Part shown: piece by piece, positions 42 to 44,669 of the stretch
How positions within the stretch are numbered: the first letter of the stretch is position 1
How the letters are laid out: every line of letters begins with the position of its first letter
DNA from: Obrimoposthia wandeli
Taxonomy: Eukaryota
Assembly (NCBI GenBank): GCA_977020255.1
Contig: CDROCS010001101.1
Location: 1 to 64,000, forward strand
Reading direction: 5' to 3'
Length of the DNA: 64,000 bases
Program-made: the position numbers and the translations under genes
The notes under the pieces: model-generated
What the model was told of the DNA's origin: nothing
Database searches by the model: none
The model's input: only the letters and a program-made list of their open reading frames with translations

Positions 42-223
42 GGTTTTAAAGTCTTTGAAGCACTGCTGAAAGCAGCAGAACCGTTTTCATGGACTAGTGT
101 CAATAACTGTACGCGGATCGCGATTTATCGAAAATAGTCGATGTACCAGATATTGATACCCGTAACCTGACACCCAAACAGATATATGCGGGTTCATATT
201 TTGAAGAGGAAAGTTATGTATAA
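42..223 (+). pseudogene. Possible degenerate 3' end of a P2 gpA-like replication gene
   Basis: Frame 3 reads GFKVFEALLKAAEPFSWTSVNNCT, resembling the SVNNC motif near the C-terminus of P2-type gpA; flanked by in-frame stops at 39-41 and 135-137; a second frame runs to a TAA overlapping the next ATG. Confidence 0.3.
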
Positions 224-686
224 AGAATTAAAGTCTGTAGTGGAACGTGATGGGCAGGCGTTATCTTGCGCGTTTAATGAAAATGATGAAATGCTTATTT
301 GCTTATCCAAAGACGCTGTTCGTGATGAGTTTATTAAATCACTTATTAGATTCACGTTAGATGAGGCAATTTCAACAGGTGAAAATCAAATGTTCCTATT
401 TTCATCACCTGGTCATCGTGATTTATTCAAAAATAAAATGTTTGATCTCGCACGTTCACAAGGATGGGAATTCGATAAGTACGGTCTTTTACTAAATGGG
501 GCTTGTCTGAGTTTTGTGTTAAAGGATAGCCGGACATATGGTGGGTTTTATAGTCATATTTATGCGATTAATTGCTTTGACGATAAGCCGTCTATTGATC
601 TTTATAACTTGATGTCCAATTTGGCTATATATGTAGATCGTCGCGCCATATTTATCTCTATAGAATCAAATAGAAACCCATTTTAA
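216..686 (+). CDS. Truncated, degenerate paralogue of the large-terminase ATPase domain (156 aa)
   Basis: ATG 216 after GAGGA; AISTGENQMFL...FKN...NGACLSF...RTYGGFYSHIY aligns by eye with AILTGDNQVFL...FKN...NGASLTF...RTGQGFNGHLY of the terminase at 11904-13670. Confidence 0.75.
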   Translation: MYKELKSVVERDGQALSCAFNENDEMLICLSKDAVRDEFIKSLIRFTLDEAISTGENQMFLFSSPGHRDLFKNKMFDLARSQGWEFDKYGLLLNGACLSFVLKDSRTYGGFYSHIYAINCFDDKPSIDLYNLMSNLAIYVDRRAIFISIESNRNPF

Positions 687-811: not shown

Positions 812-1327
812 ATGATAGACGTGAAATTTTTAAAAACAGAAGCTTTGATATTACGCAATGCAATTAATGCGTGTGATAAAGATGAAACCACAATAATAAC
901 TAAAAGTTTTCCTATTCAAAATTGTGAATTAGCATCGTTATTGCTGGCTTTCCATTACAGACAACTATGGAAAAAAATAGAAATTACTTTTGTCTATGGT
1001 TCTTGTGAAAACAACGTTCGACATGTCTGGTTAGAGACTGGTGGTTATGTGATCGATATTACGGGTGACCAATATAATCTTATGGACGATGACGAATTAA
1101 ATGTTGAGGTGATTAAGCATAGGCCTTATCCAGAAGTCCATGTCGAGACAAAATCAAAAAGTTATTTTCATCAAATGTTTAATTGTTCAGCGCCATGGAT
1201 ATTAGGAGATGAATTTTCGAATTTGAAAAAACCGTCTGTAAGAAAGTTAGTGCAATCATATAACTTGTTACAAGATGATTTGGATATCAACAGGAGTAAA
1301 ATTAATTATGCTAATAACATGCCCTAA
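812..1327 (+). CDS. Hypothetical protein with a transglutaminase/papain-like Cys-His-Asp pattern
   Basis: 171-aa ORF; motifs FPxxNCELAS, HVWLE, IDITGDQ. Confidence 0.6.
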   Translation: MIDVKFLKTEALILRNAINACDKDETTIITKSFPIQNCELASLLLAFHYRQLWKKIEITFVYGSCENNVRHVWLETGGYVIDITGDQYNLMDDDELNVEVIKHRPYPEVHVETKSKSYFHQMFNCSAPWILGDEFSNLKKPSVRKLVQSYNLLQDDLDINRSKINYANNMP

Positions 1328-1752: not shown

Positions 1753-1801
1753 TTTTGCATAACCTCGCGAATATGTGTTTTTGGTTGAGAGAGTTTTATT
1801 C

Positions 1802-2998
1802 ATGTGGGAAAGACAATACGAACAAGGACGATGGAACGGCTTAGAGTTAAACATACTCAGCACATCGTTAGATGGTGGTAAACGTCTGCATGTGAGTGAA
1901 ATTCCTTATGCTGATTTACCCAGTATTAAAGTGATGGGTAGCTCTGCGAGTAAGTTTGATCTTGAAGTTGTGTTTGTAGGTTCAAGTTCACTGATTGACG
2001 CGAACAAATTATTAGCAAGTTTAAATGAAATACCGAAAGGGGAATTGGAACATCCTTGGCTGGGTGAGATACCACTGGTGTTTGAAAGCTACTCACAAAC
2101 AATAACGACAAAGCGTGGCCTGGTCACGTTATCACTTAAATTTATACGTGATGGTAAGACGCCTAAATTAATTTCATCTGTATCAACCAAGGTTAGCGCG
2201 CAGCAACAAGCAACAATCGTTGAGGGTGTTTCAACTAAAACGTTTGTGCAAGACGTAGCAGAAATGGATATTGCAGACGTGAATAGTCTGCAACAAAGCT
2301 TTACTCATGCGATCAATGAATTAGTGGGTATTGCGAATGAACTGAATGTACCAAGCCAAATGCTCTCAGCATTGAACCAAGAACTTAATAGCGCGTTCGT
2401 GGCCATTTCAAGTATTGCCAATGCTCCAGGACAATTTGCAGAGCAATTAAGTAAAACCATAGACAGCGTGGCTAATGCCGTTCGCTCTGAACCTGACTCA
2501 GAAAATGAAGCCGTTGATAATTCAAGAACAGCGCAAGCAACAATGCTGGCTGCAGTGAATATAGAAACACCAAGTGCTCATTACAATGTGCAAATGGTCA
2601 CCGCCGCTGTGAAAATGAGTAAAGATATTGCCACATTAGAGCAAGATGAAACCTTTAGTGTGATCAACGTAAAAGGTCAGCCATCAATCATCCTGAGTGA
2701 TTTACAACTTATTGTTACAGAAGTAAACGCACGTATTGATGAAGTGACAGACCAATCAACCCTTGAAAGCACTGAGTTGTTTAATTCATTAATCACCTTG
2801 AAAGAAGGTGTTGATGCGCAATATAGCAAAGTTAAACTCGGCGTTGAGCCACAACGTTTTATTGAACGTGGACGCTTTATACCTGCGCTTGCTTTGGCTC
2901 ATGAATTAAATAGTGAATCAACGTTGGTCATGGCCCTTAACCCGTCGAAGCATCCCTTATTTTTGGCCGGAACTATTGGACTGAGGGTGAGCGAATGA
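1802..2998 (+). CDS. Mu-like DNA circularisation protein (DNA_circ_N family)
   Basis: N-terminus MWERQYEQGRWNG...GGKRLHVSEIPYAD; followed by Mu-type baseplate genes. Confidence 0.8.
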   Translation: MWERQYEQGRWNGLELNILSTSLDGGKRLHVSEIPYADLPSIKVMGSSASKFDLEVVFVGSSSLIDANKLLASLNEIPKGELEHPWLGEIPLVFESYSQTITTKRGLVTLSLKFIRDGKTPKLISSVSTKVSAQQQATIVEGVSTKTFVQDVAEMDIADVNSLQQSFTHAINELVGIANELNVPSQMLSALNQELNSAFVAISSIANAPGQFAEQLSKTIDSVANAVRSEPDSENEAVDNSRTAQATMLAAVNIETPSAHYNVQMVTAAVKMSKDIATLEQDETFSVINVKGQPSIILSDLQLIVTEVNARIDEVTDQSTLESTELFNSLITLKEGVDAQYSKVKLGVEPQRFIERGRFIPALALAHELNSESTLVMALNPSKHPLFLAGTIGLRVSE

Positions 2999-7486: not shown

Positions 7487-8521
7487 ATGCCATTAATATT
7501 CACCGGATTTGAAGAAATTAACCCGTCTGCATCTATTCCGTCACAAATACCAGAGCTTGAACTCGTCAACACCCCGTCAGTTTCAGTCGTTGCGGGGCGA
7601 AATAATGAAGGTCAGGCGTTGAGAACAACGAACGGAGCGTATATTCAATGTCGTTTACCGACGCTCTCGTCAAAACGAGCCGTTGAAATCGGTGCAGCGT
7701 TTAAATACACAAATGAAACAAGTAATAACGTATTGATACAAGTCTGTCATGCAACAGAACCGACATTGAGTACGGACCATGAGACGCAACCTACCGCACA
7801 CGTTGCCGTTGTTTACATCAAGGATGGATATCTATGTGTGGCTTATAATGGCAGTAACAAACCGCTTATAAAATTAACAGAAAATGAATACATATATGTT
7901 GAAATTAGATTTTACTTTTGCTTATATGCGACTGCATTTGCGATCCCTTCTGCCATTTTTGTAAACGGTTTAAATGTGTTGGACATGGGCTATATTGAAT
8001 CGAGTGAAAATATAGAGGATACCGTCGTATATTTTGCGGCCGCAGCAGGCAATATGCAGATTGATATTGATCATCTGTACATGTTTACCGATGACACGAG
8101 CATTAAAAAACAGCATGTGCCTATTCTGGCGTCGGGTAAAATATCCACCTTGGCATTGTCTGCAGTCAGTAATACATTTTCTGTCACTGAAACAAACTCA
8201 GATGTAGCGCTAGCGCTATCAGATAATAGCGATGACACATACATTAGTAGCGCGCTACCAGCTGACGCTGTACTTAGTGTCAATGATAGTAATATATCCA
8301 ATGTTTACGCACTTAAAATGGCAGCCAGAGGTAAATCGGAAACCACAGGCGTCACAGCATTATCTCTTGAAGACAGCAGCGGTGCAGATATATTGACAGA
8401 GAGTACGGTTGCATTTACGCGTAGTTTATCAAGCTACTCATTTCCTGCTGAGTTATCAAAAAACTCAGAAACAACGGCCGATAAAATCAATTCAGGTGCG
8501 TTGTTGAGGATTAAAACGTAA
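7487..8521 (+). CDS. Putative tail receptor-binding protein (beta-rich, possibly ConA/LamG-like)
   Basis: 344-aa ORF within the fibre cluster; beta-strand-like pattern; fold is inference. Confidence 0.5.
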   Translation: MPLIFTGFEEINPSASIPSQIPELELVNTPSVSVVAGRNNEGQALRTTNGAYIQCRLPTLSSKRAVEIGAAFKYTNETSNNVLIQVCHATEPTLSTDHETQPTAHVAVVYIKDGYLCVAYNGSNKPLIKLTENEYIYVEIRFYFCLYATAFAIPSAIFVNGLNVLDMGYIESSENIEDTVVYFAAAAGNMQIDIDHLYMFTDDTSIKKQHVPILASGKISTLALSAVSNTFSVTETNSDVALALSDNSDDTYISSALPADAVLSVNDSNISNVYALKMAARGKSETTGVTALSLEDSSGADILTESTVAFTRSLSSYSFPAELSKNSETTADKINSGALLRIKT

Positions 8522-10920: not shown

Positions 10921-11892
10921 TTATACAGCCTCCGGCTCTAAGCTCACATAATCATTGATCGTCACAACCTCTATACCCACAAAATCATTCAACTCACAGA
11001 CCGATTCAAGCAGTGGCACTAATTCATTTTTGTAAAAGATACGGTCTATTTTATTTAAATCATTACTGGTACTAAACCCTTCACGTGCAATGCTCATTAA
11101 ATCTAACGGAATACGATGACTAGCAAGCACATCATTGGTCGTCATACTCTTAATATCTTTAAATGCATCCTTGGCTTCAATTTGTCCAATTGGGGTGAGT
11201 TCCGGCGGTTTGCCGTCCTTGCCTTTACCGTTAATGAATAGGTTTTTAAACGCCCCTAAACCCGCTTGTTGCTTGAGCTTATTCTGAATATCATCTTCTT
11301 GTGCTTGGGTTAGATTCGGATCGTTCATGTAAAGCAAGTAACCGGCATGCGCACCATTAAGGTAATACTTACGGCGAAACAGTGTTGCATCTTCATTAAG
11401 CCAGATTGAACTTAATGCGGCAATGTGTTGCGGCATACCGTATATTTCTTGGCAAATATCATATTCAGACAAATGAAATACTTGTCTCGCCTTGTAATCT
11501 ATTCTGCCATCATTATTGAACTCATTTGGTTTGTAAGTGTAAAGACCAATGGTTGCTTGCGCGCGCATATACAGCGCGGGTAAATGTTTGATGCAAACGA
11601 CATCTCCCAGCGCATTTCTAATGACGGATAAATAGCTATTACCAAACGTCAAAAAGTCATACAAAAAACGCTTAAAATCAGGTTTACTCAATAATGAGGA
11701 TAGCGTGACTGAACTGGCCGCCATGTTACGTTTTACATATAAGGCAGAGCCATGCATCGAATTGGCGCGGTTTGCTTTAGCCAATGTATCTAAAGGGATC
11801 GGCGGCTCATATAAGCCATCAATTAAAGCGACTTCCATATAGCTGAGAATATCACTGGCCATTACGCTTTGTGGAGTATCAAAAGTTATCAA
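10921..11892 (-). CDS. Portal protein (P2 gpQ/PBSX family)
   Basis: HGSALYVKRN, EYDICQEIYGMP, LFRRKYYLNGAHAG motifs; TTG start. Confidence 0.95.
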   Translation of the reverse strand: MITFDTPQSVMASDILSYMEVALIDGLYEPPIPLDTLAKANRANSMHGSALYVKRNMAASSVTLSSLLSKPDFKRFLYDFLTFGNSYLSVIRNALGDVVCIKHLPALYMRAQATIGLYTYKPNEFNNDGRIDYKARQVFHLSEYDICQEIYGMPQHIAALSSIWLNEDATLFRRKYYLNGAHAGYLLYMNDPNLTQAQEDDIQNKLKQQAGLGAFKNLFINGKGKDGKPPELTPIGQIEAKDAFKDIKSMTTNDVLASHRIPLDLMSIAREGFSTSNDLNKIDRIFYKNELVPLLESVCELNDFVGIEVVTINDYVSLEPEAV

Positions 11893-11903: not shown

Positions 11904-13670
11904 TTATAAGAATGAAATAGTGGTTGAGTCATCGCGTAAAATGTCGATTGGCTCCCAGTGTAAAACGTGCATTGCAGCCCAGGCTAAATCAGCATGAGAG
12001 CCTATTTTGTTACGTGCAGAAATAAAGGTGATTTGGTTGCTCTTTTCAGTCGTATGCTGTCGTATCATCAAGAAGGAATGCACTAAATCATCCCATTCAT
12101 CATCAAATTGCAAACGTCCTGCATTGATGATTTCACGGGCTTTGTAGGCCATCATGCGTTTTATCTCGGGTGAGTAATCCAGCATGGTCAGTCCTGGATA
12201 GAATTTTCTGACCAGTTCCGCGACCGCAGAGCCCACGCCGCCGACATCAATAGCCAAATAAACCACCGTGTATTTTTCACAAATACCTTGAATCGCGTTA
12301 GCCTGGTCTTCATAGCTTGAGCCTTTTAAACGAAGGCGTTCAATGATGCGAAATGATCCCCCTTTGATAGCCGGTTTTAAGGCAACAACTAACCCCGCAT
12401 CGTCAGAGCCTTCACCTTGCCCGCCGCCGCGCGGGTCATAACCCACTAATACCTCACGCTTACCAACAGGGTGAAGCGCATCAAAATCAACATCACTCCA
12501 TAATGATGTATCTGCTTTACAGGCAAGCAATGCCTTAATGCTAAAGAATGAAGATGCATCGTCTAAAAACACGCAGCGCAGTAAGTTATCAAATACTGTT
12601 TTATCCGGATATTTACGGCGTAGTTTATCCATGTTGAAAAAGTTAGCGCCACCGGCTATCGCATCATCCACGGTTATCATCTGACGGAAAATACCATCAA
12701 CGCCTAGCGCACCGGCTTTAAGTGCTTTATGGCTTATTTCAATTTTTAAATCTTTTCTGCCGGACCATTTTGAATATGCTTCATGGGCGGTACTCGATGG
12801 CGTCGATAAATACGTTGTGCGGTACTTGGATTGAATTGTCAGACCACCAATAAGATCGTCTAGCTCTTTGAACTTCGGGATCCAAAATGCTTCATCAATA
12901 TATAAATGGCCGTTAAAGCCTTGACCTGTGCGAGCGTTCGTTGATAAGAACGTTAAACTTGCGCCATTACTGAGTTGTAAATCATCTTTCCCTTTTAATT
13001 CCACATCGCCAAGTTCAAGTGCAAATTTACGAATGTAGTTTTTAAATATCTCACTTTGCTTACGCGACGCAGATAAAAACACCTGGTTATCGCCGGTTAA
13101 TATCGCATCTTCAAACGCTTCGAATGCAAAATAAAATGTTAAGCCAATTTGACGAGACTTAAGGTAAAAACGCATCTCGTTAATGTCGTTATTACACTTA
13201 TGATCGTGAATGTTTTTTTGATACTCAAAGAACGTCTTTTCTCTGAAATTCGCCAATATATCAGGCGTGATACCTGAGATATCATTTTTAGTTTTATTGT
13301 TTGGCCTGCCACGTCGCTGTTCTGAATGACTGTCGTTATGACTGGTTTTTTTCTTACGGCGCTCAGCTGTGTCGCGTTTGTGTTTTTGCTCAAGCAGTAT
13401 TTCGAGTTCTTTAAGTTGCGACTCGTGCTTTCTGTCAACCCAAAGCAGATACGCAATACGCTGTCGAAGCATTAATTCAACCGGTGCATCATCGCGCATC
13501 TGCTTCCAACCAAATTTAGATATCCATTGTTGGACTGTTCTTGGCGCAATCACTAGTGCATCGGCAATCTCGGCTGTTTTGTACTGGCGTAAGTAATACC
13601 CCAAGGCATGCGTTTGCATCTGGGTATAAATGGGTTTTTCTGGTGGCGTGGAGGTTAAGTTTATTTTCAT
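11904..13670 (-). CDS. Terminase large (ATPase) subunit, P2 gpP-like
   Basis: KSRQIG Walker A region, LYIDEAFW Walker B, STP motif, C-terminal HADLAWA; likely start ATG 13670. Confidence 0.95.
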   Translation of the reverse strand: MKINLTSTPPEKPIYTQMQTHALGYYLRQYKTAEIADALVIAPRTVQQWISKFGWKQMRDDAPVELMLRQRIAYLLWVDRKHESQLKELEILLEQKHKRDTAERRKKKTSHNDSHSEQRRGRPNNKTKNDISGITPDILANFREKTFFEYQKNIHDHKCNNDINEMRFYLKSRQIGLTFYFAFEAFEDAILTGDNQVFLSASRKQSEIFKNYIRKFALELGDVELKGKDDLQLSNGASLTFLSTNARTGQGFNGHLYIDEAFWIPKFKELDDLIGGLTIQSKYRTTYLSTPSSTAHEAYSKWSGRKDLKIEISHKALKAGALGVDGIFRQMITVDDAIAGGANFFNMDKLRRKYPDKTVFDNLLRCVFLDDASSFFSIKALLACKADTSLWSDVDFDALHPVGKREVLVGYDPRGGGQGEGSDDAGLVVALKPAIKGGSFRIIERLRLKGSSYEDQANAIQGICEKYTVVYLAIDVGGVGSAVAELVRKFYPGLTMLDYSPEIKRMMAYKAREIINAGRLQFDDEWDDLVHSFLMIRQHTTEKSNQITFISARNKIGSHADLAWAAMHVLHWEPIDILRDDSTTISFL

Positions 13671-13676
13671 CGTTAC

Positions 13677-13775
13677 AGTGTGCAATAACAACGTAAATAC
13701 CTCAGTAAATCAAGTTTCTACATGTCCTATCTAGAAATAGGTTCGGTATTAAAAGAGGTCATATTTCGGTAAATT
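13677..13775. promoter_or_regulatory. Putative divergent Ogr-dependent late promoters (terminase/scaffold)
   Basis: TTTCTA-N11-TAGAAA at 13715-13737; TAAATT 44 bp right of centre and CACACT (minus strand) 44 bp left, the same spacing as at 9827. Confidence 0.6.
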
Positions 13776-14703: not shown

Positions 14704-15771
14704 ATGCAAGAAATAACAAAAATAGCGGTTGAAGGTTATAAAAAAGCCGTTGCAAAGCAAAACAATGTCGCTGATGTGACTGAAAAATTCAGTGTTACAC
14801 CAGCGGCGACACAAAAAATAATCGCCGTTATTCGTGAAAACAATTGGTTCCTGAGCAAAATTAATATTATGCCCGTAAGCAACCAAAAGGGTGAAGCGCT
14901 TGGTTTAGGTGTCTCGGGCATGATTGCCAGCCGTACCAATACTAAAGCGGGCTCAGAGCGTAAACCGAAAGCTGTGTATAGCATGACGCCGATGCCGTAT
15001 CTGTGTGAACAAGTAAACTTTGATTCACATATTCGTTACGATCAATTAGATGCATTCGCGCACTTAAATAACTTCAATAAAATCATTGCATCACAAACCC
15101 GTGAGCAAATTGATTTAAACAAAGTGACTATCGGTTTTCATGGTGAACGTAGCGAGCCTGATACAGATGCGAGCGCAAACCCAAATGGTGAAGATGTGTG
15201 TAAAGGTTGGTTGCAGGCTATTCGTGAACATAATTCTGATGCCATGCTCACCGAAGGTAAAACAGTGAGTGAAATTCGCATCGGTGAAGGTGAACCCGTC
15301 GGTGATGGGTCGGGCGCTGGTCTAGGTGATTTCATTAATCTTGATTTAGCCGTGATGAACGTCAAAGGTTTACTTGGTGATGAGTGTGCCAACGATTCTG
15401 ATTTAGTGGCGTTAATTGGCTCTGATTTACTGGCTTTTGATAAAGCCAAATTCTATGCCGCACATGGTAATACGCCCAGTGAAAAATCAAAGATTGAAGA
15501 TAAACAAGTGATCGGCACTTATGGTGGTTTGCCGTCTGCGTGTCCACCCTCATTCCCACCAACCGGCATTCTTGTTACTAGTTTCAAGAACCTGTCGATT
15601 TATATTCAAAAAGATTCGATTCGTCGTACTGCTGCAATCAAGAATGACCGACTTGATCAGCTTGAAAACTTTGAATCAATGAACATGGCTTACGTGGTCG
15701 AGCAGTTACCCAAAGCCGCCGCGCTTGAGTTTGATAACGTGAAGTTATGGATTGATGGCCAATGGGTTTAA
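14704..15771 (+). CDS. Major capsid protein, P2 gpN family
   Basis: FSVTP...Q, IGFHG, NPNGEDVCKGWLQ motifs. Confidence 0.95.
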   Translation: MQEITKIAVEGYKKAVAKQNNVADVTEKFSVTPAATQKIIAVIRENNWFLSKINIMPVSNQKGEALGLGVSGMIASRTNTKAGSERKPKAVYSMTPMPYLCEQVNFDSHIRYDQLDAFAHLNNFNKIIASQTREQIDLNKVTIGFHGERSEPDTDASANPNGEDVCKGWLQAIREHNSDAMLTEGKTVSEIRIGEGEPVGDGSGAGLGDFINLDLAVMNVKGLLGDECANDSDLVALIGSDLLAFDKAKFYAAHGNTPSEKSKIEDKQVIGTYGGLPSACPPSFPPTGILVTSFKNLSIYIQKDSIRRTAAIKNDRLDQLENFESMNMAYVVEQLPKAAALEFDNVKLWIDGQWV

Positions 15772-19066: not shown

Positions 19067-19771
19067 ATGTTATCGATATTAATAAAGCGAAAAGCGCGAG
19101 CAAGAAAAAAACAAGAAAATGAAGATAAGCCAATTCAAAGCGACATATTATCAATTAAAAGTAGCGCTAAGCAACGCGTAACACTTGAAGATAAGCCCTG
19201 GCCTGAAGTGCAAAATACCTTAAAAAGGGATTTAGAGTATTCAAGAACCTTGGCTGGCTCGCAAGAAAAAATACCGTTTAAAAAAGAACTGATTAAAAAA
19301 TATAAACCATTAGTCACCAAGTTACTTGCAACCCATGAAAATTTAGATGGGTTGGATGTCGTGTGGTGGTTCTATCAATGGCAGATTGATTGTGGCCTGT
19401 TGCCGTTAATGCACGACGCTTTTAAAGCGGCAGTGCTAAAAGGTTTAGATACACCGGCTAATTGGAAGTCGAATGGACAAACGGCGTATTGCGATATTGT
19501 TTTTAAATATTCACATGAAGCACATAAAGCGAATATCGAGTTTAATACCGCGTATTTAAGCGGTGCAATCAATGATTTGTTAGCGGGTCAGATTGCCACT
19601 AATCCACCGCTTAAAGTTAAAATGTTCCGTTTAGCGGGCGATTTATTATTACAAGCGGGTAACGCTGAAGACGCATTAACCTTGTATAACGTTGTCATGA
19701 AAATAGACCCGCAAAAAGGCGGTCGTAAAACCAAAGTGAAAGAATTAAAGGAAGCATTAGGCCATGAGTAA
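19067..19771 (+). CDS. Terminase small/endonuclease subunit, P2 gpM-like (displaced)
   Basis: LKRDL...SQEKIPFKKELIKKY...WQIDCG, helical C-terminus ending GRKTK..LKEAL. Confidence 0.75.
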   Translation: MLSILIKRKARARKKQENEDKPIQSDILSIKSSAKQRVTLEDKPWPEVQNTLKRDLEYSRTLAGSQEKIPFKKELIKKYKPLVTKLLATHENLDGLDVVWWFYQWQIDCGLLPLMHDAFKAAVLKGLDTPANWKSNGQTAYCDIVFKYSHEAHKANIEFNTAYLSGAINDLLAGQIATNPPLKVKMFRLAGDLLLQAGNAEDALTLYNVVMKIDPQKGGRKTKVKELKEALGHE

Positions 19772-20229: not shown

Positions 20230-22116
20230 ATGAAAATGAATCTATCCGTGGTGATGGGCATAGTAGATAAAACCAGTAAACCACTGCAAGGCATGGCAAG
20301 TGATTCTGATTATTACGCCAAGAAAATAAAAAAAATACAAAGCGCACAATCAGATGATTCCAGTGCATTAACCATGATTGCCTCTTACCAGAAAATTCAA
20401 AAAGAATTAGATAAAAATGCATTGGAAGGTGAAGAGGCAACAGAAAAACTTGCCAAGCTAAAGGCGCAAATGGCGGCTACAAAAGAGCCAAGCGCGGCAC
20501 TGACTAATCGCCTTGCTAAGCAAACTGAAAAAGTAGCCAAACTGTCTGCTAACAATGATAAATACGAGAACAGTCTTCACCAAACAAGCAAGCAGATGAA
20601 GAAAGCAGGCGTTAATGTTCGTCATCTTGACAGTGAGTTTGATCGCCTGTCGCAGAGCCAGCGCGATAATGCCAAACAGGTTGAAGCTGTCAGTAATAAA
20701 TATAAACGATTACGCACAGCGATGGCACCGGTTCAAAGACTGAGTCAGTCAATTAAAATGCCTAACCTTAAATCGGCGGCATTGGGTAAAGGGGCGGCTA
20801 TATTAGGCGGGTTAAGCCTGGGCGGATTATTTAGTCAGATGAATAGCGCGGCAGCTGAAATGGATAAACTGTCTAAAGCGGCGAATAACTTAAATATGCC
20901 GGTTGAAGAACTGCAAGCGATGCAATCTCAAGCGGAGCATGCGGGGGTGAGTTCGGACACGATGAGCGCCGCTATGGTGCGGTTTACCAAGCGGTTGGGT
21001 GTACTGCAAACTACGGGCAAGGGCGCGATGGGTTCGTTTCTGCAGAAGGGAAAGAATCCACTATATAGAGAGCTAAAGGGCGCGAAGGATACACAGCAAG
21101 CTTATGACAGTGTGCTTGAGTCATTTTCAAAGTTAAAGACTAACCAGGAACAGATGGCTTTTGCTGATGCTGCATTCGGGCAAGATGGACGGAAAATGTT
21201 GATCATGCTACGTGACGGCACGAAAGGCTTAACCCTTGCGCGTAAAGAATTCAATGAAACGGGTGGAGGAGTAACATCGGAAGATGCCGCCAAAGCCGAA
21301 GCGTACAATGATGCCATGCAAAAAGTGCAGGAAAGCATTAGCTCGGTGAAGTTTACCGTATTAGCACCGGTGATGATGAAGCTCACTGAGGTATTTACAG
21401 TATTTTCCAATAAATTTAAGGATGTAAAATGGCGCACCGATTTAATTGAAAAAATCAAAGCCGCAGTTAACGCGCTTTACGATGGATTTAAGTTTTTAGG
21501 CAACATCATTTTATTTATATCTCAGAATTTTAAAGGCATGATTGCAGTGCTCGCTATCTTCAAAATAGCGATGATTGCGATTAACGCAGCCGTTATGGCA
21601 AACCCAATCGGCCTCATGGTGGCTGCAATCGGTGCAGCTATTATTGCTATTATTTATTTAGTCGACAGATTCATTGGTTTTGATGTGATCTTAAAAGCGG
21701 TAGGTGAAACCATAGGTTGGGTATGGGACGGTATCAAGGCATTGATAAACATGTTGCCGGATGCTTTAATCCCCGATGGTTGGAAAGCCTCTGCAGAAGC
21801 GGCTGGGGGGGAAGTCGATAAGCTAAATCAAAAACTAAATACGATTAAAGACAAAAATGCCAAGTTAGGTATCACCACAGATGAAACGATTAATCAGACC
21901 ACAACAAGCAAATCCAATGAACAACGAAAACAAGGCTTGTCAGGGAATATTATCCCCATGTCAAAAGCAACGCCGTTAACAAACCAAACAATAAAAAGCC
22001 AAGCCGAAGTTGCCGTTACCATTAAATCAGAAAAGCCAATCAGCATAGACAAAGCAACCAGTGAGAAGGGGACTAATTTAAACCTGAATTTAGGTAATAT
22101 GATGATGAGTTATTGA
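20230..22116 (+). CDS. Tail tape measure protein
   Basis: 628 aa; Ala/Lys-rich helical; C-terminal ANPIGL..AAI hydrophobic repeats. Confidence 0.93.
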   Translation: MKMNLSVVMGIVDKTSKPLQGMASDSDYYAKKIKKIQSAQSDDSSALTMIASYQKIQKELDKNALEGEEATEKLAKLKAQMAATKEPSAALTNRLAKQTEKVAKLSANNDKYENSLHQTSKQMKKAGVNVRHLDSEFDRLSQSQRDNAKQVEAVSNKYKRLRTAMAPVQRLSQSIKMPNLKSAALGKGAAILGGLSLGGLFSQMNSAAAEMDKLSKAANNLNMPVEELQAMQSQAEHAGVSSDTMSAAMVRFTKRLGVLQTTGKGAMGSFLQKGKNPLYRELKGAKDTQQAYDSVLESFSKLKTNQEQMAFADAAFGQDGRKMLIMLRDGTKGLTLARKEFNETGGGVTSEDAAKAEAYNDAMQKVQESISSVKFTVLAPVMMKLTEVFTVFSNKFKDVKWRTDLIEKIKAAVNALYDGFKFLGNIILFISQNFKGMIAVLAIFKIAMIAINAAVMANPIGLMVAAIGAAIIAIIYLVDRFIGFDVILKAVGETIGWVWDGIKALINMLPDALIPDGWKASAEAAGGEVDKLNQKLNTIKDKNAKLGITTDETINQTTTSKSNEQRKQGLSGNIIPMSKATPLTNQTIKSQAEVAVTIKSEKPISIDKATSEKGTNLNLNLGNMMMSY

Positions 22117-22231
22117 GTGGCAATGTAGACGCTCAATAAGGTATGGCCCTATCCATATATATCCAATACAACCCATCCTGTGCCGCCAAAGTGAAGCCTT
22201 TTGAAATAATAAATTATGATGCTATAAGATA

Positions 22232-22501
22232 TTATTTGTTTCTAGCATTAAGTCTCAGTTTGTCAGGTAAAAGTCTTGTTTTCCTTTCATATAAAATAAA
22301 AATATAATAAAATCAGTTGTATATGAAGTGTTGTAAATAATTAACAAGACTTTAATAATAAATAACAGGACTGCACACTTTCCCAGAACAGATTTAAATG
22401 TCAGATTGATGTTTTATCTTATTTTATTTTTCATTTGATTAGCCGTTATTGACTAGGGTGAATGGATTTGGGGAATCGAGACGTCCTGCTATACAAATCT
22501 T
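22232..22501 (+). repeat. Conserved ~270-bp leader, copy 1 (attI-like, ends ATACAAAT-CTT)
   Basis: Alignable with 23791-24060; shared exact 26-mer AATAAATAACAGGACTGCACACTTTC (22357-22382). Confidence 0.85.
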
Positions 22502-22519
22502 ATATTTAGTAGGATGCAC

Positions 22520-23035
22520 ATGAGCGTTGACATTGATAAGTATAAATGTTTATACGAATACGAAAAAAATCTATTTGAAGAAGAAAGCGGAAGATATAGG
22601 CGTCTTGAAGACAAAGCTATGAAGTATCTAAGCGCAACAACTTTGGCAATCGGAGCTTATCTATTTCTAGTTCGTGGAATAATAGAAGAGCTTATTCCGC
22701 CGAATAATTATATTGAGTGGTTTGTTTTAATATCTGTGGGTTTGACTTTTATAGCATTTATTTCTTCATGGAGTCTTATTTTTAGAGCTATAAAACTAAC
22801 TGATATCGTTAAAATGCCTTCTGATGAAAAAACGATTAACTACTTTAAAGATAATGAGCTTGATACTGTTTACTTAGGTTTAAGTAAACAGTATTCAAAT
22901 GGTATTAAAGTCATAGAAAAAAACTATGAAAATAAGCTGAAACTTGTTCGTATGGCTTATTCCGACATTATGTTTACTGGTTGGTTGTTAGTCGTTTCAA
23001 TTATATTTATATCAATACTAAAATGGAGTACTTAA
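22520..23035 (+). CDS. Cassette A membrane protein, 3 predicted TM helices (Pycsar TM-effector-like topology)
   Basis: N-helix RLEDKAMKYL, TM1, TM2, loop, ENKLKLVRMA, TM3; AT-rich; start 22514 or 22520. Confidence 0.65.
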   Translation: MSVDIDKYKCLYEYEKNLFEEESGRYRRLEDKAMKYLSATTLAIGAYLFLVRGIIEELIPPNNYIEWFVLISVGLTFIAFISSWSLIFRAIKLTDIVKMPSDEKTINYFKDNELDTVYLGLSKQYSNGIKVIEKNYENKLKLVRMAYSDIMFTGWLLVVSIIFISILKWST

Positions 23036-23036
23036 A

Positions 23037-23165
23037 ATGAGTGAAAAAGAACAAGAAAATATCAAACCCGCTGTGCCTGTCGAAGTAGATGCGCCTGAAT
23101 TGGTTATCTGTACAGAAAGCTATAAACCACCACAACGTGATAACAAAACACAGTTGAAAGACTAA
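23037..23165 (+). CDS. 42-aa Pro/Glu-rich peptide in cassette A (missed by the ORF track)
   Basis: GGAG 8 nt before the ATG; MSEKEQENIKPAVPVEVDAPELVICTESYKPPQRDNKTQLKD; stop abuts the attC. Confidence 0.6.
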   Translation: MSEKEQENIKPAVPVEVDAPELVICTESYKPPQRDNKTQLKD

Positions 23166-23255
23166 ATAAAACAAGTTGCTCAAACGGAAAAATAACAGTG
23201 ATCATCGTTACGCGATTCTAGCCAATCATGATTTCCGATTATTAAGGTGTTACTT
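23166..23255 (+). other. Degenerate attC site of cassette A
   Basis: ATAAAAC-AAGTTGCTCAAACGGAAAAAT...ATTTCCGATTATTAAGGT-GTTA; partial stem, damaged R box. Confidence 0.55.
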
Positions 23256-23594
23256 GATAAATAGATGTTTCAGGCTTATTTTAGCTGAAACATTGATTCC
23301 CCAATTTAGTGCAAAATTATCCCACCTCTTTTAGTCCGTTATAGCTAAGTTAACATACATAAATGAGTCCTTGAGTAGGTATCTTACGTGAGTGTGCTTT
23401 TGGTTATGCGTGTTACATACAATATAAACAGAGCCTAAATCGCTTAATTGTTCCTCGCGCACTCTGCCGCCACAGCTTTACAAGAATGTATTGATAAATA
23501 ATTGATTTGCTAATGCTTTATGTTTTAAGGTAAAGGGGTAACCCTACCCCGTAATAAAGGGGTTTAATCAACCTCATGTATCTGAACTCTATTA

Positions 23595-23632
23595 AACATA
23601 ATGATAGATTGAACAAAGGCGATTAAATGGCG
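23595..23632 (+). repeat. Conserved 38-bp tail element, copy 1
   Basis: 32/38 identical to 24868-24905. Confidence 0.8.
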
Positions 23633-23660
23633 GTCAACTGGTGACTATGCACGATTAAAT

Positions 23661-23723
23661 GCGGCTATATGCGGCTATATGAGGCTATGTGCGGCTATAT
23701 GCGGCTATATGCGGCTATATGCG
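23661..23723 (+). repeat. 10-bp minisatellite (GCGGCTATAT) x6
   Basis: Five exact units and one variant GAGGCTATGT. Confidence 0.95.
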
Positions 23724-23790
23724 TATAGCAAGCTATATGCGTAGCGAGAATAATTTAATAAACATTGAAAAACAATGATTTCATACAGGG

Positions 23791-24060
23791 TTATTTGTTT
23801 ATTTCTCAGCTAAGTCACAGTTTGTAATGAAATAGTCTTTTTTTCCTTGTCCTAAATTAAAAAGGCTAATAAAATCAGTGAGCATATTTAGTCCTTGTTA
23901 ATAATTAACAGGACTTAAAAAATAAATAACAGGACTGCACACTTTCTCAACATAGGTTTTAATGTCAGATTGGCATTTTATCTTATCTTTCATTTGATTA
24001 GTTGTTATTGACTAGAGTGAATAGATTTGTGGAATCGAAACGTCCTATTATACAAATGTT
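23791..24060 (+). repeat. Conserved ~270-bp leader, copy 2 (attI-like, ends ATACAAAT-GTT)
   Basis: Alignable with 22232-22501; exact 26-mer at 23921-23946. Confidence 0.85.
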
Positions 24061-24845
24061 AGCTGTATCACATTCCACTTTGTATAGTCGTGAACTTTAA
24101 AGAGAGTAAATTCAATATTTTATGGTAAATTAGATTACATGAAAATTGAGTTAGTTAACTCTCACGACGTAAGAAGAACACTTCTCAGTTTTGTATCATT
24201 GGACTTCTATCAAAACAGCTTTAAAAGTATTACGTGGTAGAAATGTGTTTAGTAAAATGGATGCAGGTAAACATGCAAACTTTCATATCCAGCCAAATCC
24301 GAAAGACTTCGAGAAGGCAAGTGAGATATGTTTAAAGTTCAAGTTTTCTGGGAGTCACAAACTTATGTTTGGAGATACTTTTGATACCCCTAATCCACCT
24401 CCCAATTCATCTGATTCTATCTATCACTTGATCACATCGTCATGGGAGCATTATATTTCTGGCGATAGGGCAATTGGAAATATTAAACATTGGCAGAGCA
24501 ATGTGTACCCTAACACTGATGGGTTGGTTTTTTTAGGCATAGAGACGTTTGATGATAAACTTTCTTGGTTTTTTACAATTGATACAAACAAAAAAATTAA
24601 TGAGCCCAAATCTTATTTTGGCTTAATGAACTATAAAAGCTTTAAAGAGTACGAAGAAAAACTTTATTATAAAAATTTAAAGTTGGATATTGAAGAAGCT
24701 GAAATATTTTCAAAAAACAAAAAGTTTGTTGTCATACCATGTTAGTAAAACAGCTAACAAGTCACTAAAGCAGGACAAATAACCGTTGGTTTTTGCTCCT
24801 GCGTCGCTTATTTTAACCAACTATCATTTGCCTCTTAGTGAGGCG
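24058..24845 (+). mobile_element. Integron-type gene cassette B
   Basis: Begins G/TTAGCT (24058) and ends in an attC whose left box AGCTAAC (24752) is the exact reverse complement. Confidence 0.8.
24139..24745 (+). pseudogene. Cassette B hypothetical protein, possibly frameshifted
   Basis: ATG 24139 opens a 33-codon frame ending at TAG 24240; a long overlapping +1 frame (24191-24745) has no ATG until about codon 23. Confidence 0.45.
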
Positions 24846-24851
24846 TTAATT
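24752..24851 (+). other. attC site (intact) of cassette B
   Basis: AGCTAAC...GTTAATT with nested complements TCACTAA/TTAGTGA, CAAAT/ATTTG and GTTGGTT/AACCAAC. Confidence 0.88.
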
Positions 24852-24867
24852 CATTTCTCTTAGCTCT

Positions 24868-24905
24868 AACATAATGACAGACTGATCTGAGGCGATTAAA
24901 TGACG
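24868..24905 (+). repeat. Conserved 38-bp tail element, copy 2
   Basis: AACATAATGACAGACTGATCTGAGGCGATTAAATGACG. Confidence 0.8.
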
Positions 24906-25034
24906 ACAACCACATGACGGTAGATACGAAGAAGGACTAATTCAATAAGTTACCCAATATCAGTTTAAAAAATTGGTACTAGATTCAAATAATAAGCGCA
25001 TCAATGAGGTATTTTTTTAGCTAATTAACGTACA

Positions 25035-25100
25035 TGTGGTCATAAAGTGGACGTATATTAACAATAAAGCATTAAATTCAACAACTTAAATATAATGTGG
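25035..25100 (+). other. Candidate attR region (arm-type repeats + IHF-like site)
   Basis: TGTGGTCA (25035) and AGTGGACG (25046) resemble the P2 Int arm consensus TGTGGACA; ATTCAACAACTTA (25076) is one mismatch from WATCAANNNNTTR. Confidence 0.4.
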
Positions 25101-25123
25101 AACCACCTTCGGGTGGTTTTTTT
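25101..25123 (+). terminator. Rho-independent terminator
   Basis: AACCACC-TTCG-GGTGGTT-TTTTT. Confidence 0.85.
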
Positions 25124-25240
25124 ATTTGTGCATTTTATGGTTTAACGTCTATATTATTAACAGTGGGATTGAAAATATTAACGTGTTTTTACGTTAATAT
25201 GACCATCAGAATTAATACTGTATTCTTTGGAGTAGTTATA

Positions 25241-25579
25241 ATGGACATATTAAAACCTTATGATGGAATGATAATTTTACCTATCGTCACAGATCTAGAT
25301 TCTGAGCATGTAGTCAATCTTCAGCCTAGTTTAGAATTGTTAGTTCAAAATCATAAAGAGAATATTATTTTAGATTTTTCAAACGTGAACTTTATCGACT
25401 CAACAGGTATCGGTGCGATTGTTTTTTTATTCAAAAGACTTACCTCACAACGTCGTTCACTTTCTCTTCTTAAAGTATCAGGTCAACCACATAAATTAAT
25501 GACGATGTTACGTGTTGAAAACGCAATTCCTTTTATTGAAAACATTCCTGAATCTAGTACAGATAACTCGGCATACTGA
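25241..25579 (+). CDS. STAS-domain anti-sigma-factor antagonist (SypA-like)
   Basis: LDFSNVNFIDSTGIGAIV with phosphorylatable Ser; start ATG 25241. Confidence 0.9.
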   Translation: MDILKPYDGMIILPIVTDLDSEHVVNLQPSLELLVQNHKENIILDFSNVNFIDSTGIGAIVFLFKRLTSQRRSLSLLKVSGQPHKLMTMLRVENAIPFIENIPESSTDNSAY

Positions 25580-25597
25580 AAAGCCGTAAGGTATTGA

Positions 25598-26746
25598 ATG
25601 AATAGATTATTGCTATGGATAGCTATATGCATTTCCCTTTCTAGTTGTACAAACTGGCCGAGCATTGGCTATTTTGAAAATACAACAAAACATACTAAAG
25701 AAAGAATCGAATTTAAGCAGCATTATAACTATTTGAATTTACATTTTTCAGTGGCCAATCTACGAGGAGCACAAACCTGTACACCTGCCTACGTAAAAAC
25801 GGTTGAAAATATTAACAGCCGTGTTGAGAAGGCTATTGCAGTAGAAGACCCACGAGATATAAAAATTGAGATGGCCATCCTAGAAAAAAACATCACCAAC
25901 TTAGTCGTGCAACTCAATCGTATGACAAGTAGTACCAATTGTGCCCAGCCGACACGTTTGATTACATCAAATTTTGTTCACCCGCTTATTTATCAGCTTG
26001 ATCTTTTATTGTACTGCGGTCCTCAATTTGAAGAGGGTAGTGCCATTTTGACTGAAGAATACAAAGTGTGTCTGCGCCAAGTAAGTTTTTTACTGTTAGA
26101 TAATCCAGATATTATAATTGAATACACGAAATACCGATTGTTTGAAAATCGTATTAGTCCAGAAATAGCACAATCAAATATCAATTACACCAATAATATA
26201 GTGACTCATAACGTTGCTAACATTATCGATAAAGAAATTGAAAAGTTAGGTAATAGTACTGTTAACAGTACGGTGAATCCAAATGATGAAGATTATAATG
26301 ACATAATGCGTCAGTATTTACTCTTTGAGCAAGTACCCAGTGTGAGTGTGCAGCAAATTTCTAAATTACAATTAAACCTAGACCAAGTACATAGCCCCGT
26401 TCAAATTCATGAAATAGCTACAGGTGATGCGAGTCATAATAAATCCAAGTTATCTGCATTAGATGATTATGCGACAAGCTTAGAGACGGTTGAGTTACTT
26501 AATTTACGTACAGACGTGATCTTCGATTATGTGTTGGATATTACTGCAGACCCACTGCGACACAAGGTTATCTATGAAGATCTACGACTTAGCTCTAGCA
26601 CGTCAGTTACACCAGTGATCAGTACATTATTGTGGCAATCAAAGCGTAATCAAGATATTGACCATAAAGTGAAAGATTGGCGGTTTTTGTTGAATGAAGG
26701 AGAGTTGTTTTCCGATTCTGTACTGCCAAAAGGAGTCGCATTATGA
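25598..26746 (+). CDS. SypB-like exported/outer-membrane protein
   Basis: Lipoprotein-like signal (SLSSC); GAQTCTPAYV; FEEGSA OmpA-like start; position between STAS and export genes. Confidence 0.55.
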   Translation: MNRLLLWIAICISLSSCTNWPSIGYFENTTKHTKERIEFKQHYNYLNLHFSVANLRGAQTCTPAYVKTVENINSRVEKAIAVEDPRDIKIEMAILEKNITNLVVQLNRMTSSTNCAQPTRLITSNFVHPLIYQLDLLLYCGPQFEEGSAILTEEYKVCLRQVSFLLLDNPDIIIEYTKYRLFENRISPEIAQSNINYTNNIVTHNVANIIDKEIEKLGNSTVNSTVNPNDEDYNDIMRQYLLFEQVPSVSVQQISKLQLNLDQVHSPVQIHEIATGDASHNKSKLSALDDYATSLETVELLNLRTDVIFDYVLDITADPLRHKVIYEDLRLSSSTSVTPVISTLLWQSKRNQDIDHKVKDWRFLLNEGELFSDSVLPKGVAL

Positions 26747-37738: not shown

Positions 37739-38011
37739 ATGGCAGAACAAGAAGTTCATATCTCAAGTCTAATTATCCACGTAAAGCCAGAATCTTTGGT
37801 AGACGTGAAAGATAAAATTTCAGCTCTCCCAGATGCTGAAATTTACGGTGATAGTGAAGAGGGTAAAATTATCGTCGTATTAGAAACCAGTAATCAAAAA
37901 TTTGTTACCGACATTATTGATAAAATTAATAATTTCGAACATGTCTTAAGTACTTCTCTTGTTTTTCACCAAATTGAAACTATTGATCCATCATGTGAGG
38001 ATGATCTATGA
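37739..38011 (+). CDS. napD: NapA chaperone NapD
   Basis: HISSLIIHV...GKIIVVLE; GTGA-type overlap with napA. Confidence 0.93.
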
Positions 38012-40494
38012 AATTAACCAGACGTGCGTTTGTTAAAGCAAATGCGGCAGTCTCTGCTGCTGCCATTGCTGGCGTTACGCTTCCAGCTAGTGCAACAAAT
38101 CTTATTGCAGTTAGCGATGAAACTAAAATTAAATGGGACAAAGCCCCATGTCGTTTCTGCGGTACAGGTTGCTCTGTATTAGTCGGAACACAAGGCGGTA
38201 AGGTTGTTGCTACACAAGGTGATCCTGAAGCACCTGTGAACAAAGGTCTTAACTGCGTTAAGGGTTACTTCTTATCGAAAATTATGTACGGTAAAGATCG
38301 TCTTACGACACCTTTATTACGTATGCGTGATGGTAAGTTTGCTAAAGATGGTGAATTCGCTCCTATTTCATGGGATCAAGCTTTTGATATCATGGCTGAG
38401 AAGTGGAAAGCTGCATTAAAAGAAAAAGGCCCAGAGTCAGTAGGTATGTTTGGTTCTGGTCAATGGACTGTGATGGAAGGTTATGCTGCTGTTAAATTGA
38501 TGAAAGCTGGTTTCCGTTCAAACAATATCGATCCGAATGCGCGTCACTGTATGGCTTCTGCTGTTGGTGGTTTCATGCGTACGTTTGGTATTGATGAGCC
38601 AATGGGTTGTTATGATGACTTTGAAGAATCAGATGCGTTCGTTCTTTGGGGTTCAAACATGGCTGAAATGCATCCAATTCTATGGACGCGTATCACTGAC
38701 CGCCGTTTAAGTAATCCACACGTTAGAGTTAACGTATTATCAACGTATAAGCATCGTTCTTTTGAGCTTGCTGATACTGGTGTTATTTTCAATCCACAGT
38801 CAGATCTAGCAATGGCTAACTTTATTGCTAACTACATCATCCAAAACGATGCTGTAAACTGGGATTTCGTTAATAAGCACACTCACTTTAAACGCACAGC
38901 AACAGATATTGGTTACGGTTTACGTGACGAACATCCAATGCAAGCTAAAGCTAAAAACCCTAACTCGGGTAAAATGACAGCAATGACATTTGAAGAGTAT
39001 AAGACGTCGGTTGCTGAGTATACAGTTGAGAAAGCATCTGAAATCTCAGGTGTATCAGAAGAAAAACTGATTATTCTTGCTAAGCAATATGCTGATCCAA
39101 ACATTAAAGTAATGTCGCTATGGACTATGGGTATGAATCAACATACACGTGGTGTATGGATGAACAGCCTTGTTTACAACATTCACTTACTTGTTGGTAA
39201 GATTTCACAACCAGGTAATGGTCCGTTCTCACTGACTGGTCAACCATCAGCATGTGGTACAGCACGTGAAGTGGGTACATTCTCACACCGTCTACCAGCT
39301 GATATGGTTGTTGCGAATCCAAAACATCGCGCAATCGCTGAGAAAATCTGGAAACTACCAGAAGGTACTATTCCACCTAAGCCAGGCTTACACGCTGTTG
39401 CACAAAACCGTGCACTAAAAGACGGTACATTGAACGCGTACTGGACTATGTGTAATAACAACATGCAAGCTGCACCAAACATGATGGAAGAAGGTTTACC
39501 GGGTTACCGTAATCCAGCTAACTTCATCGTTTGTTCTGACCCTTACCCAACAGTAACTGCACAAGCATCTGATCTTATTTTACCAACAGCAATGTGGGTA
39601 GAGAAAGAAGGCGCATACGGCAACGCAGAACGTCGTACGCAAGCTTGGTATCAACAAGTTAAATCTGTTGAAGGTGCAAAATCAGATTTATGGCAGTTAA
39701 TGGAATTTGCTAAACGCTTCAAAATTGAAGAAGTGTGGGGCGAAGATCTAATCGCTAAAATGCCTGAAGTCCGTGGTAAGACTATGTACGACGTACTGTA
39801 TAAAAACGGTAACGTTGACGCATTCCCACTAAGCGAAGCGCAAGAGCTAAATGATGATGCAAATGATCAAGGTTTCTACGTACAAAAAGGTCTATTCGAA
39901 GAATACGCAACCTTTGGTCGTGGTCATGGTCATGATTTAGCACCATACGATGTTTACCATACAGTACGTGGTTTACGTTGGCCTGTAGTGAACGGCGTTG
40001 AAACGAAATGGCGTTTTGCAGAAGGCAGTGATCCTTACGTAGGTAAAGGTAAAGGCTTTGAGTTCTACGGTAAGCCAGACGGTAAAGCAAATATCATCTT
40101 TGCACCGTATGAAGCGCCACCAGAAGTGCCAAATGAAGAATATGACATGTGGTTATGTACTGGTCGTGTATTAGAACATTGGCATTCAGGTACAATGACG
40201 GCTCGTGTTCCTGAGTTATACCGTGCAATGCCGGATGCACTTTGTTATATCCATCCTGATGACGCTAAAAAACGTAATGTGCGTCGTGGTGATGAAGTTC
40301 TTATTGAATCTCTTCGTGGTGAAGTACGTTGTCGTGTGGAAACACGCGGCCGTAACCGCCCACCAGTAGGCTTAGTATTTGTACCTTGGTTTGATGCGCG
40401 AGTATTAATTAACAAGGTATGTTTAGATGCTACGGATCCGTTATCAAAACAAACGGATTATAAAAAATGTGCAATTAAAATTACCAAAGTGTAA
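38008..40494 (+). CDS. napA: Periplasmic nitrate reductase catalytic subunit, copy 1
   Basis: Tat signal TRRAFVK; CRFCGTGC; [11 protein letters not shown]. Confidence 0.97.
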
Positions 40495-40582
40495 TTAAAC
40501 CTGCATATCTTACTGAATGAATTTGCCAGCAATAGATGCTGGCAAATAACGGATTTATTTGCCAATCGGCGGAGAACATAAT

Positions 40583-41050
40583 ATGAGAAAATTATTGGCT
40601 GTACTGCTAGCTGCAGGGACTTTATTCTCAGTATCAGCACAAAGTACAGAGACTGCTGTAATTGAAAATGTAAACAACGGTGGCGTTGCATCATTACGTG
40701 GGATCACTGAGTTAGATACAACGCGTAAAGCGGATGAGTTGAAACGTGTGATCAAAGATCGTAGCCCGATTGATCGTGATTACGTATACCAACCACCACT
40801 TGTTCCGCATCAAACACGTCATTATGAAGTGTCTTTAAATGCGAACAAATGCTTGTCATGCCACAGCTGGAAATATGCTGGTGAAATGGGCGCGACTAAA
40901 ATCAGTGTAACGCATTATCAATCACGTGAAGGCGAAGTATTATCTGACGTATCACCACGTCGTTATTTCTGTCTACAGTGTCATGTTACACAAGCAGATG
41001 CAGCACCGTTAATCGACAATGACTTTAAACGTGTAGATTCATTACGCTAA
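40583..41050 (+). CDS. napB: Diheme cytochrome c NapB, copy 1
   Basis: PPLVPH, CLSCH, CLQCH. Confidence 0.95.
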   Translation: MRKLLAVLLAAGTLFSVSAQSTETAVIENVNNGGVASLRGITELDTTRKADELKRVIKDRSPIDRDYVYQPPLVPHQTRHYEVSLNANKCLSCHSWKYAGEMGATKISVTHYQSREGEVLSDVSPRRYFCLQCHVTQADAAPLIDNDFKRVDSLR

Positions 41051-41068
41051 CGAAAAAGAGGCGATAAA

Positions 41069-44582: not shown

Positions 44583-44669
44583 TTCTTAACTGCATTGCTA
44601 GAGACACGTATTGCCAGCATCATTGTTGGCAATAAACAGGTTTATTTGCCATTAGGCGGAGAATATAAT

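Follow-up and report, generated by a model that had tools for sequence, protein, structure and literature searches.

T4 vs.8, Ksap1 and Ksap2 are small phage proteins that resemble the ATPase domain found in the terminase large subunit (TerL). Their function is unknown, they activate the defence protein Avs2, and vs.8 keeps both Walker A and Walker B (Evans et al. 2026, PMC13601566). The same study reported that EcAvs2 holds the ATPase domain of TerL by means of a bridging ATP, which touches the ATP bound to the terminase, that SeAvs3 reads features of the terminase active site, and that Upx is activated by the TerL ATPase domain alone (PMC13601566). Here we analysed a TerL-like open reading frame (ORF) at positions 216-686, forward strand, of a 64,000-nt stretch of DNA (the window; positions 1 to 64,000 of contig CDROCS010001101.1, Obrimoposthia wandeli assembly GCA_977020255.1), which opens inside a P2-like prophage. 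Like vs.8, Ksap1 and Ksap2, the family to which this ORF belongs is small, phage-encoded, terminase-ATPase-like and confined to narrow phage taxa (PMC13601566; PMC11564622). Unlike vs.8, in which Walker A and Walker B are conserved, the family has neither. No sequence link to vs.8, Ksap1 or Ksap2 was found, our exhaustive search returned the family only, and the likeness is one of description, not of direct sequence comparison.

Ppi of Staphylococcus aureus pathogenicity islands (SaPIs) and Rpp of phage-inducible chromosomal islands (PICIs) bind the small terminase and are not derived from a terminase. By analogy with them, the present gene encodes a small protein beside the capsid genes of a satellite-like element, where a role at a helper terminase is plausible. 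It differs in having no homology to either, in being terminase-derived and in occurring in helper-type phages as well. Pseudo-enzymes derived from the packaging motor are almost unstudied, and the comparable vs.8 and Ksap1/2 were noticed through their triggering of Avs2. The present family is a cleaner case. Its members cannot be ATPases, selection acts on them, and they are linked to the late switch; carriers include helper-type phages as well as a satellite-like plasmid with a capsid gene of its own.

Similarity to the large terminase and distribution of the family

The resident prophage encodes a complete gpP-like TerL of 595 aa (11904-13691, minus strand) with helix-turn-helix (HTH), ATPase and nuclease domains (Terminase_5, Terminase_6N and Terminase_6C). 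BLASTP aligned residues 49-152 of the ORF with TerL residues 194-300 at 32% identity and with 2 small gaps (E 1e-11), and tblastn gave the same identity at E 5e-10; the homologous segment occupies 360-671 on the forward strand. When a profile of the four long family members was compared with 32 TerLs by hhalign, the probability was 98.8% (E 7.8e-17) over family columns 48-150. The alignment begins at column 48, and the first 47 residues are unaligned. The first-pass annotation had aligned the ORF with the resident terminase by eye, and both BLASTP and the profile-profile comparison bore this out. PHROG 3746 ("terminase large subunit") also matched the window protein (E 1.6e-7). No match to PF03237 (Terminase_6N) was found for the window protein at E <= 1, which places it below the Pfam curated threshold; weak PF03237 matches were present in six of seven relatives, with a best E of 1.7e-5. 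A sequence profile search of the PDB gave nothing relevant. The sequences show clear common ancestry with the P2-like TerL ATPase domain over about 105 residues.

The start codon is the ATG at 216, a position that agrees with the homologues. A Shine-Dalgarno-like AGAGGA, read from the sequence, lies at 205-210 on the same strand, 5 nt ahead of it, so the earlier description of an intact ORF with a ribosome binding site holds. Residues 1-48 (216-359) form an N-terminal extension that is found only in the four long-form members and has no detectable TerL similarity. The homologous segment spans the TerL ATPase core from after the P-loop helix to the strand of the coupling motif. The protein ends where the ATPase core strand of TerL ends, so that the lid subdomain and the nuclease domain are missing; it also has no N-terminal HTH, and its size is one quarter of that of TerL. 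No nuclease-like sequence, that is, nothing resembling the C-terminal RNase H-like domain, was found after residue 156 in any frame. We considered a second, broken terminase gene as the source and rejected it. A tblastn search of TerL against the whole window gave no TerL-like fragment besides the ORF itself, and no frame of 1-1700 holds a further TerL-like piece. This indicates that the ORF is not a fragment left by the recent break-up of a second terminase.

A G+C-rich hairpin followed by a T-run lies at 62-84, just upstream of the gene. It may terminate the transcription unit that lies before it; the terminator scan did not report it. Promoter and terminator scanning of 1-1900 gave nothing useful.

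Seven family members were aligned with the 32 TerLs and their columns counted. The eight Walker A columns, invariant or nearly so in the TerLs, are unrecognisable in the long forms and absent in the short forms. At the Walker B Asp column (32/32 TerLs) all seven members have Leu, Ile or Val, and at the Glu column (32/32 TerLs) there is Asn in four, Ser in two and Asp in one; the window protein has Ile-Asn at this place. The Ser of the coupling motif is kept in 7/7, and its Thr (32/32 TerLs) and Pro (31/32) columns are replaced in every member, Ser-Thr-Pro becoming Ser-Ile-Glu in the window protein. Other TerL columns lost or replaced in all seven are the invariant Gln after the second strand, a Ser-Thr-Asn run and another invariant Gln. 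By contrast, the TerL-invariant glycines, the aromatic and hydrophobic core residues, an Asn-Gln pair, the Asn-Gly-Ala turn and the Arg before the last strand are kept in six or seven of the seven. The losses of Walker A, Walker B, the STP motif and the nuclease domain that had been noted on first reading are all present in these alignments.

At 3-4 residues past the Walker B position there is an invariant Asp (residue 122), with Asp, Glu or Ser after it. In the AlphaFold model this pair lies after the end of the strand and not at the catalytic position, and without a P-loop it cannot make an ATPase. Compared with the P2-like TerL ATPase domain (gpP, PF03237), the family has the same predicted Rossmann-like core and the invariant structural residues, but it lacks the P-loop, the Walker B Asp-Glu, the coupling motif, the lid, the nuclease and the N-terminal HTH. 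It therefore fails every functional defining feature of a TerL ATPase despite its descent from one. The alignment reads as the pattern of a pseudo-enzyme, with the TerL fold conserved and the nucleotide-binding and catalytic residues gone. All family members are acidic (pI 4.4-6.1), which makes DNA unlikely as the target.

The structural prediction agreed with this relationship. With the 32 TerLs added to the alignment, AlphaFold gave an alternating strand-helix core with a predicted local distance difference test score (pLDDT) of 83.4 and a predicted template modelling score (pTM) of 0.79. Foldseek against the PDB placed the ATPase domain of the P74-26 terminase first, then those of Sf6, HK97, T4 gp17 and phi29, with query-normalised template modelling (TM) scores of 0.51-0.65 to solved terminase ATPase domains. 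The PhiV-1 terminase from the Avs3 complex (8dgc_E) was also among the matches (query-normalised TM 0.57). A search of BFVD gave seven matches at E <= 1e-3, mostly large terminases together with a few small phage proteins of 122-176 aa. The comparison with the terminase that the first-pass annotation had proposed, by pairwise alignment and by AlphaFold, thus showed significant homology and a model that matches TerL ATPase domains. The fold match is consistent with the sequence result, but it is not independent of it. The N-terminal extension was modelled as a helix, a beta-hairpin and then a long helix. Its final strand-loop-helix portion may take the place of the first strand and P-loop, which the family has lost. 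Another model, built from the family sequences alone, was discarded; the matches in its fold search were isocitrate dehydrogenases, at chance level only.

A word-indexed search found one relative, and seven clusters emerged when 1.84 billion representatives were searched exhaustively with HMMER: three long forms (149-150 aa), three short forms (116-119 aa) and one fragment. The short forms start where the TerL similarity starts. Two further loci came from a pattern scan of metagenome and viral contigs, filtered by the family profile. In that scan a degenerate DNA pattern of the most family-specific motif gave 86 metagenome and 4 viral matches, of which only three were real, L116, L154 and L184 (L184 equals L009). 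Scanning contigs with the family alignment gave 80 full-length TerLs and no family member, the pattern being common to real terminases. Ten loci are known, all with open reading frames, and the copies are 30-54% identical. TerLs of the same lineage number 2271 at E <= 1e-10, against the seven clusters of the family, and the gene was found in none of the INPHARED sequenced phages and in no PLSDB plasmid. This indicates that the gene is rare and dispensable within the phage lineage. It is accessory, and hundreds of related phages lack it.

Pairs of long forms gave ratios of non-synonymous to synonymous divergence (dN/dS) of 0.32-0.55 at dS 0.74-1.16. Pairs that include a short form had reached or passed saturation, dS being at least 1.5 or not computable, and the computable dN/dS values were 0.10-0.47. 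Six copies from Moritella viscosa were identical in DNA and were uninformative here. Judged from the aligned sequences, neutral decay is ruled out by dN/dS together with the column pattern, and the protein seems to be fairly fast-evolving. The statement that the ORF does not look like decay was upheld by the intact reading frames, the conserved structural columns and the dN/dS of the long-form pairs.

These data bear on the idea that the gene is a functionless relic of an older terminase gene that once stood beside cos and is carried along by its linkage to ogr. The gene does lie near a candidate cos element (see below), it is rare and dispensable in the lineage, and its dN/dS is fairly high for a phage gene. 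However, all ten copies remain open although their synonymous divergence is close to saturation or past it, structural columns are invariant and catalytic ones consistently replaced, no other TerL debris surrounds the gene in any frame, and it is retained in either order relative to ogr and also in an element of another type. The relic explanation is largely refuted, and we consider it highly improbable.

Linkage to ogr and an element of Moritella viscosa

Phage loci with the family gene are L007, L008, L009, L090, L091, L093, L116 and L154. In 10/10 loci the family gene has an ogr-like gene at a distance of no more than 650 bp. In the window ogr, which encodes an Ogr/Delta zinc-finger activator of late genes, is annotated at 1275-1631 on the forward strand (Pfam PF04606, E 6e-14), and its true start is probably internal to these coordinates. 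Long forms are followed by ogr, and in most short forms ogr comes first. The stop and start codons of the family gene and ogr overlap in the short-form loci L009 and L116. The linkage and these overlaps suggest that co-transcription with ogr is likely. No common motif was found in the upstream regions of the long-form genes.

Wherever the flank suffices, the family gene stands between an IncFII-RepA-like replication gene and the baseplate operon. The earlier placement in a zone between rep and the late genes was found to apply to loci L008, L009, L090 and L091; the window starts only shortly upstream of the gene, and this zone is not visible in it. A Vibrio prophage (PQ189295) has rep, ogr, 1.1 kb without annotated genes and then the baseplate operon, and it carries no family gene. 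This indicates that the zone is variable. In the window a 171-aa ORF (812-1327, forward strand) stands between the gene and ogr and is absent at this place from all related loci. It had no significant match in Pfam, PHROGs, PADLOC or NCBIfam and is probably an accessory gene; its last 50 nt or so lie within the annotated ogr ORF. One of the loci, L091:4795-18258, is a prophage remnant of about 13.5 kb that runs from integrase to lysis genes and has no head, sheath or tube genes. It retains an intact family gene beside ogr.

So constant a linkage would suit a partner or modulator of the Ogr late-transcription switch, an inert domain that binds Ogr or the polymerase-Ogr complex and tunes late timing. 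The association holds in all ten loci, in both gene orders and in the satellite-like element too, and in L009 and L116 it goes as far as coding overlap. But there is no precedent for a terminase-derived partner of a transcription factor, related phages run the same layout of ogr, non-coding block and tail operon without a family gene, and the linkage may merely mean a common transcription unit or a permissive insertion site. We regard this role as improbable.

A conserved non-coding block lies at 1661-1782, between ogr and the tail/baseplate operon, with a G-rich core at 1682-1699. The block is 87% identical to L001:5249-5367, in an element of M. viscosa, against about 68% in common coding DNA; the stretch shared with that element is 123 nt long. 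The 18-nt core recurs without a mismatch in seven related loci and occurs only once in the 64 kb window, and over 45 nt the block has 91% identity to the Vibrio prophage without a family gene. A single site that is so highly conserved and common to phage and satellite-like element would fit cos, for which the block is a candidate; the alternative is a key promoter for the tail operon. Since the block is also present in phages that have no family gene, the gene is not needed for its function. The classical P2 late-promoter dyad was not enriched in the window (21 matches against 24 expected). Vibrio phage PV94 was tried as a guide to the position of cos and set aside for its different genome layout.

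The closest homologue of the window protein, P0001 (150 aa, 53% identity), is encoded on 8-10 kb contigs of M. viscosa in at least four assemblies, and two of these contigs are circular permutations of one 9.2 kb unit. The element (L001:1-9902; also L002, L003 and L004) encodes a ParA-like ATPase, three Ogr/Delta proteins (PF04606) and a DUF5906/VapE primase. It carries its own P2-type major capsid gene, with the TerL-core paralogue immediately downstream, and the paralogue stands behind the same conserved non-coding block as in the window. A possible PBECR1-type nuclease (E 5.9e-5) is below the Pfam cutoff. No portal, scaffold, terminase or tail gene was found in the element, and no integrase, sid or psu among its called genes.

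In its gene content the element looks like a P4-like satellite that lives as a plasmid with its own capsid and presumably depends on a helper. In common with P4-type satellites it has a DUF5906/VapE primase and Ogr/Delta activators, has no portal, terminase or tail genes, and carries a short non-coding block that is highly identical to one in a P2-like phage from the same genus. Unlike them, it has a P2-type capsid gene, the TerL-core paralogue, a ParA-like gene and iteron-like repeats, and none of the integrase, sid and psu genes. We found no description of it in the M. viscosa pan-genome paper, and it appears to be an undescribed type of P4-like element.

Repeats were also seen in this element. 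An inverted repeat of 197 + 41 nt (L001:4822-5060 and 7930-8167, 95-98% complementary) flanks a module that contains the conserved block along with two ogr-like genes, the capsid gene and the TerL-core paralogue and that could be an invertible or transposed cassette. The region L001:8314-9641 contains five iteron-like direct repeats of 32 nt, three of them at 112 nt spacing, and a 41-nt exact repeat. Near these repeats a stretch of 74-230 nt is 87-94% identical to small Moritella and Aliivibrio plasmids. The region is a probable plasmid origin or resolution region.

Possible targets of the protein

Our proposal, which we hold only tentatively, is that the protein is an inert mimic of the TerL core that acts on the packaging machinery in competition between helper and satellite. 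The protein would be made as the phage switches to late functions, with or beside ogr, as its linkage and the overlapping stop and start codons suggest. The acidic protein, unable to bind ATP, would then work purely by protein-protein binding and would occupy a site normally taken by the TerL ATPase core. Its preferred target would be the packaging machinery, namely a neighbouring TerL motor subunit, the small terminase or the portal. By such binding it may bias or block DNA packaging, with P2/Mu-like helper phages on one side and P4-like satellites on the other. The packaging machinery is slightly favoured as the target because the closest homologue adjoins a capsid gene in a satellite-like element. 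There the paralogue sits in the morphogenesis gene cluster, after the capsid gene, in what would be a satellite. Such capsid-gene surroundings in satellites are where helper-hijack functions are usually found. Of the two functions put forward in the first-pass annotation, both still conjectural, the packaging inhibitor gains indirect support from this homologue, and the sensor decoy loses ground (see below).

Several points weigh against this proposal. We infer both the binding and the effect of the protein. A helper-dependent satellite would harm itself with an unselective poison of the motor, and selectivity could not come from a small terminase of the M. viscosa element, which encodes none. 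Helper-type phages also have the gene, and the side that it serves is ambiguous. Hitch-hiking with ogr and the block may have brought it into the satellite, though it has since been kept intact. On the structural side, the Foldseek E-values against the PDB were weak (about 6e-3), and the TerLs in the input alignment bias the model towards the TerL fold. AlphaFold on the seven family sequences alone was poor (pLDDT 66.8) and gave no TerL match.

In a more specific form of the packaging proposal, the pseudo-terminase core would bind to the motor that packages DNA, or to partners of that motor, and settle which party's DNA is taken up. Both P2/Mu-like marine phages and a P4-like satellite that is borne on a plasmid and encodes a capsid would have it, and its regulation would be coupled to the Ogr switch beside a shared cos site. 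That all of these parts hold together seems to us unlikely.

The TerL-like fold also raises the question of terminase-sensing immunity. An antagonist or decoy of host TerL sensors (Avs1-3, Upx) would fill the sensor pocket without triggering it and so protect the phage and the satellite that rides with it, both of which would gain. The model has the fold of a TerL ATPase core, with the Avs3-bound PhiV-1 terminase 8dgc_E as one match. Production with Ogr, before the real TerL appears, would suit such a role, as would the accessory, fast-evolving profile of the gene, and an anti-defence function has been suggested for the small TerL-ATPase-like T4 vs.8, Ksap1 and Ksap2 (PMC13601566). However, the P-loop and Walker B that were lost are the ATP and active-site features read by EcAvs2 and SeAvs3 (PMC13601566). 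The known small TerL-like proteins activate Avs2 and do not block it, and the ATPase domain alone activates Upx, so that binding would be expected to trigger. The protein matched no PADLOC or anti-defence family, and no TerL sensor gene was seen in the window. The decoy idea is weakened because the ATP-site features are lost and because binding normally means activation for these sensors, and we consider it rather doubtful. The identity of the partner would tell whether terminase mimicry serves phage-satellite conflict or counters terminase-sensing immunity.

The resident prophage and the rest of the window

Within the window, the resident prophage runs from the gene at 216-686 through the 171-aa ORF and ogr to a Mu-like baseplate/tail operon, lysis genes, and portal and TerL genes on the minus strand. 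After TerL come P2-type scaffold, capsid, head-completion, tail-completion, sheath and tube genes, a gpM-like small terminase (TerS) gene and a gene of tape-measure size. The first gene of the baseplate/tail operon (1775-2998, forward strand) encodes a protein with a DNA circularisation protein N-terminal domain (PF07157, E 8e-21), and this operon start is syntenic with L007, L009, L090, L091 and L116. The portal protein is at 10921-11892, minus strand (PF04860, E 7e-16). The P2-type major capsid protein is encoded at 14704-15771, forward strand (PF05125, E 1e-105), and its gene is 46-64% identical by tblastx to the capsid gene of the M. viscosa element (L001:6016-7029). The ATPase region of the resident TerL is 100% identical to a protein named by NCBI from Moritella sp. 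F3, which indicates that the host is a Moritella.

The prophage mixes P2-type head genes with a Mu-type baseplate module. The gpM-like TerS gene (19067-19771, forward strand; PF05944, E 4e-10) is displaced to after the tail tube gene and is not in its place between the capsid and head-completion genes.

The GC content falls to about 33% in 22000-26000, on the prophage's right edge, where the ORFs 22514-23035 and 24191-24745 have no family matches; this may be a cargo or attachment region. The ORFs tested past about 24 kb have domains usual for a chromosome, among them those of polysaccharide export, molybdopterin oxidoreductases, TamA/TamB and a Clp ATPase. Two adjacent gene sets, at 38008-41641 and 42096-45739, have the same ORF sizes (828 aa, 163 or 180 aa, and 190 aa), the first 828-aa protein being a molybdopterin oxidoreductase. 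From their ORF sizes they look like a tandem duplication.

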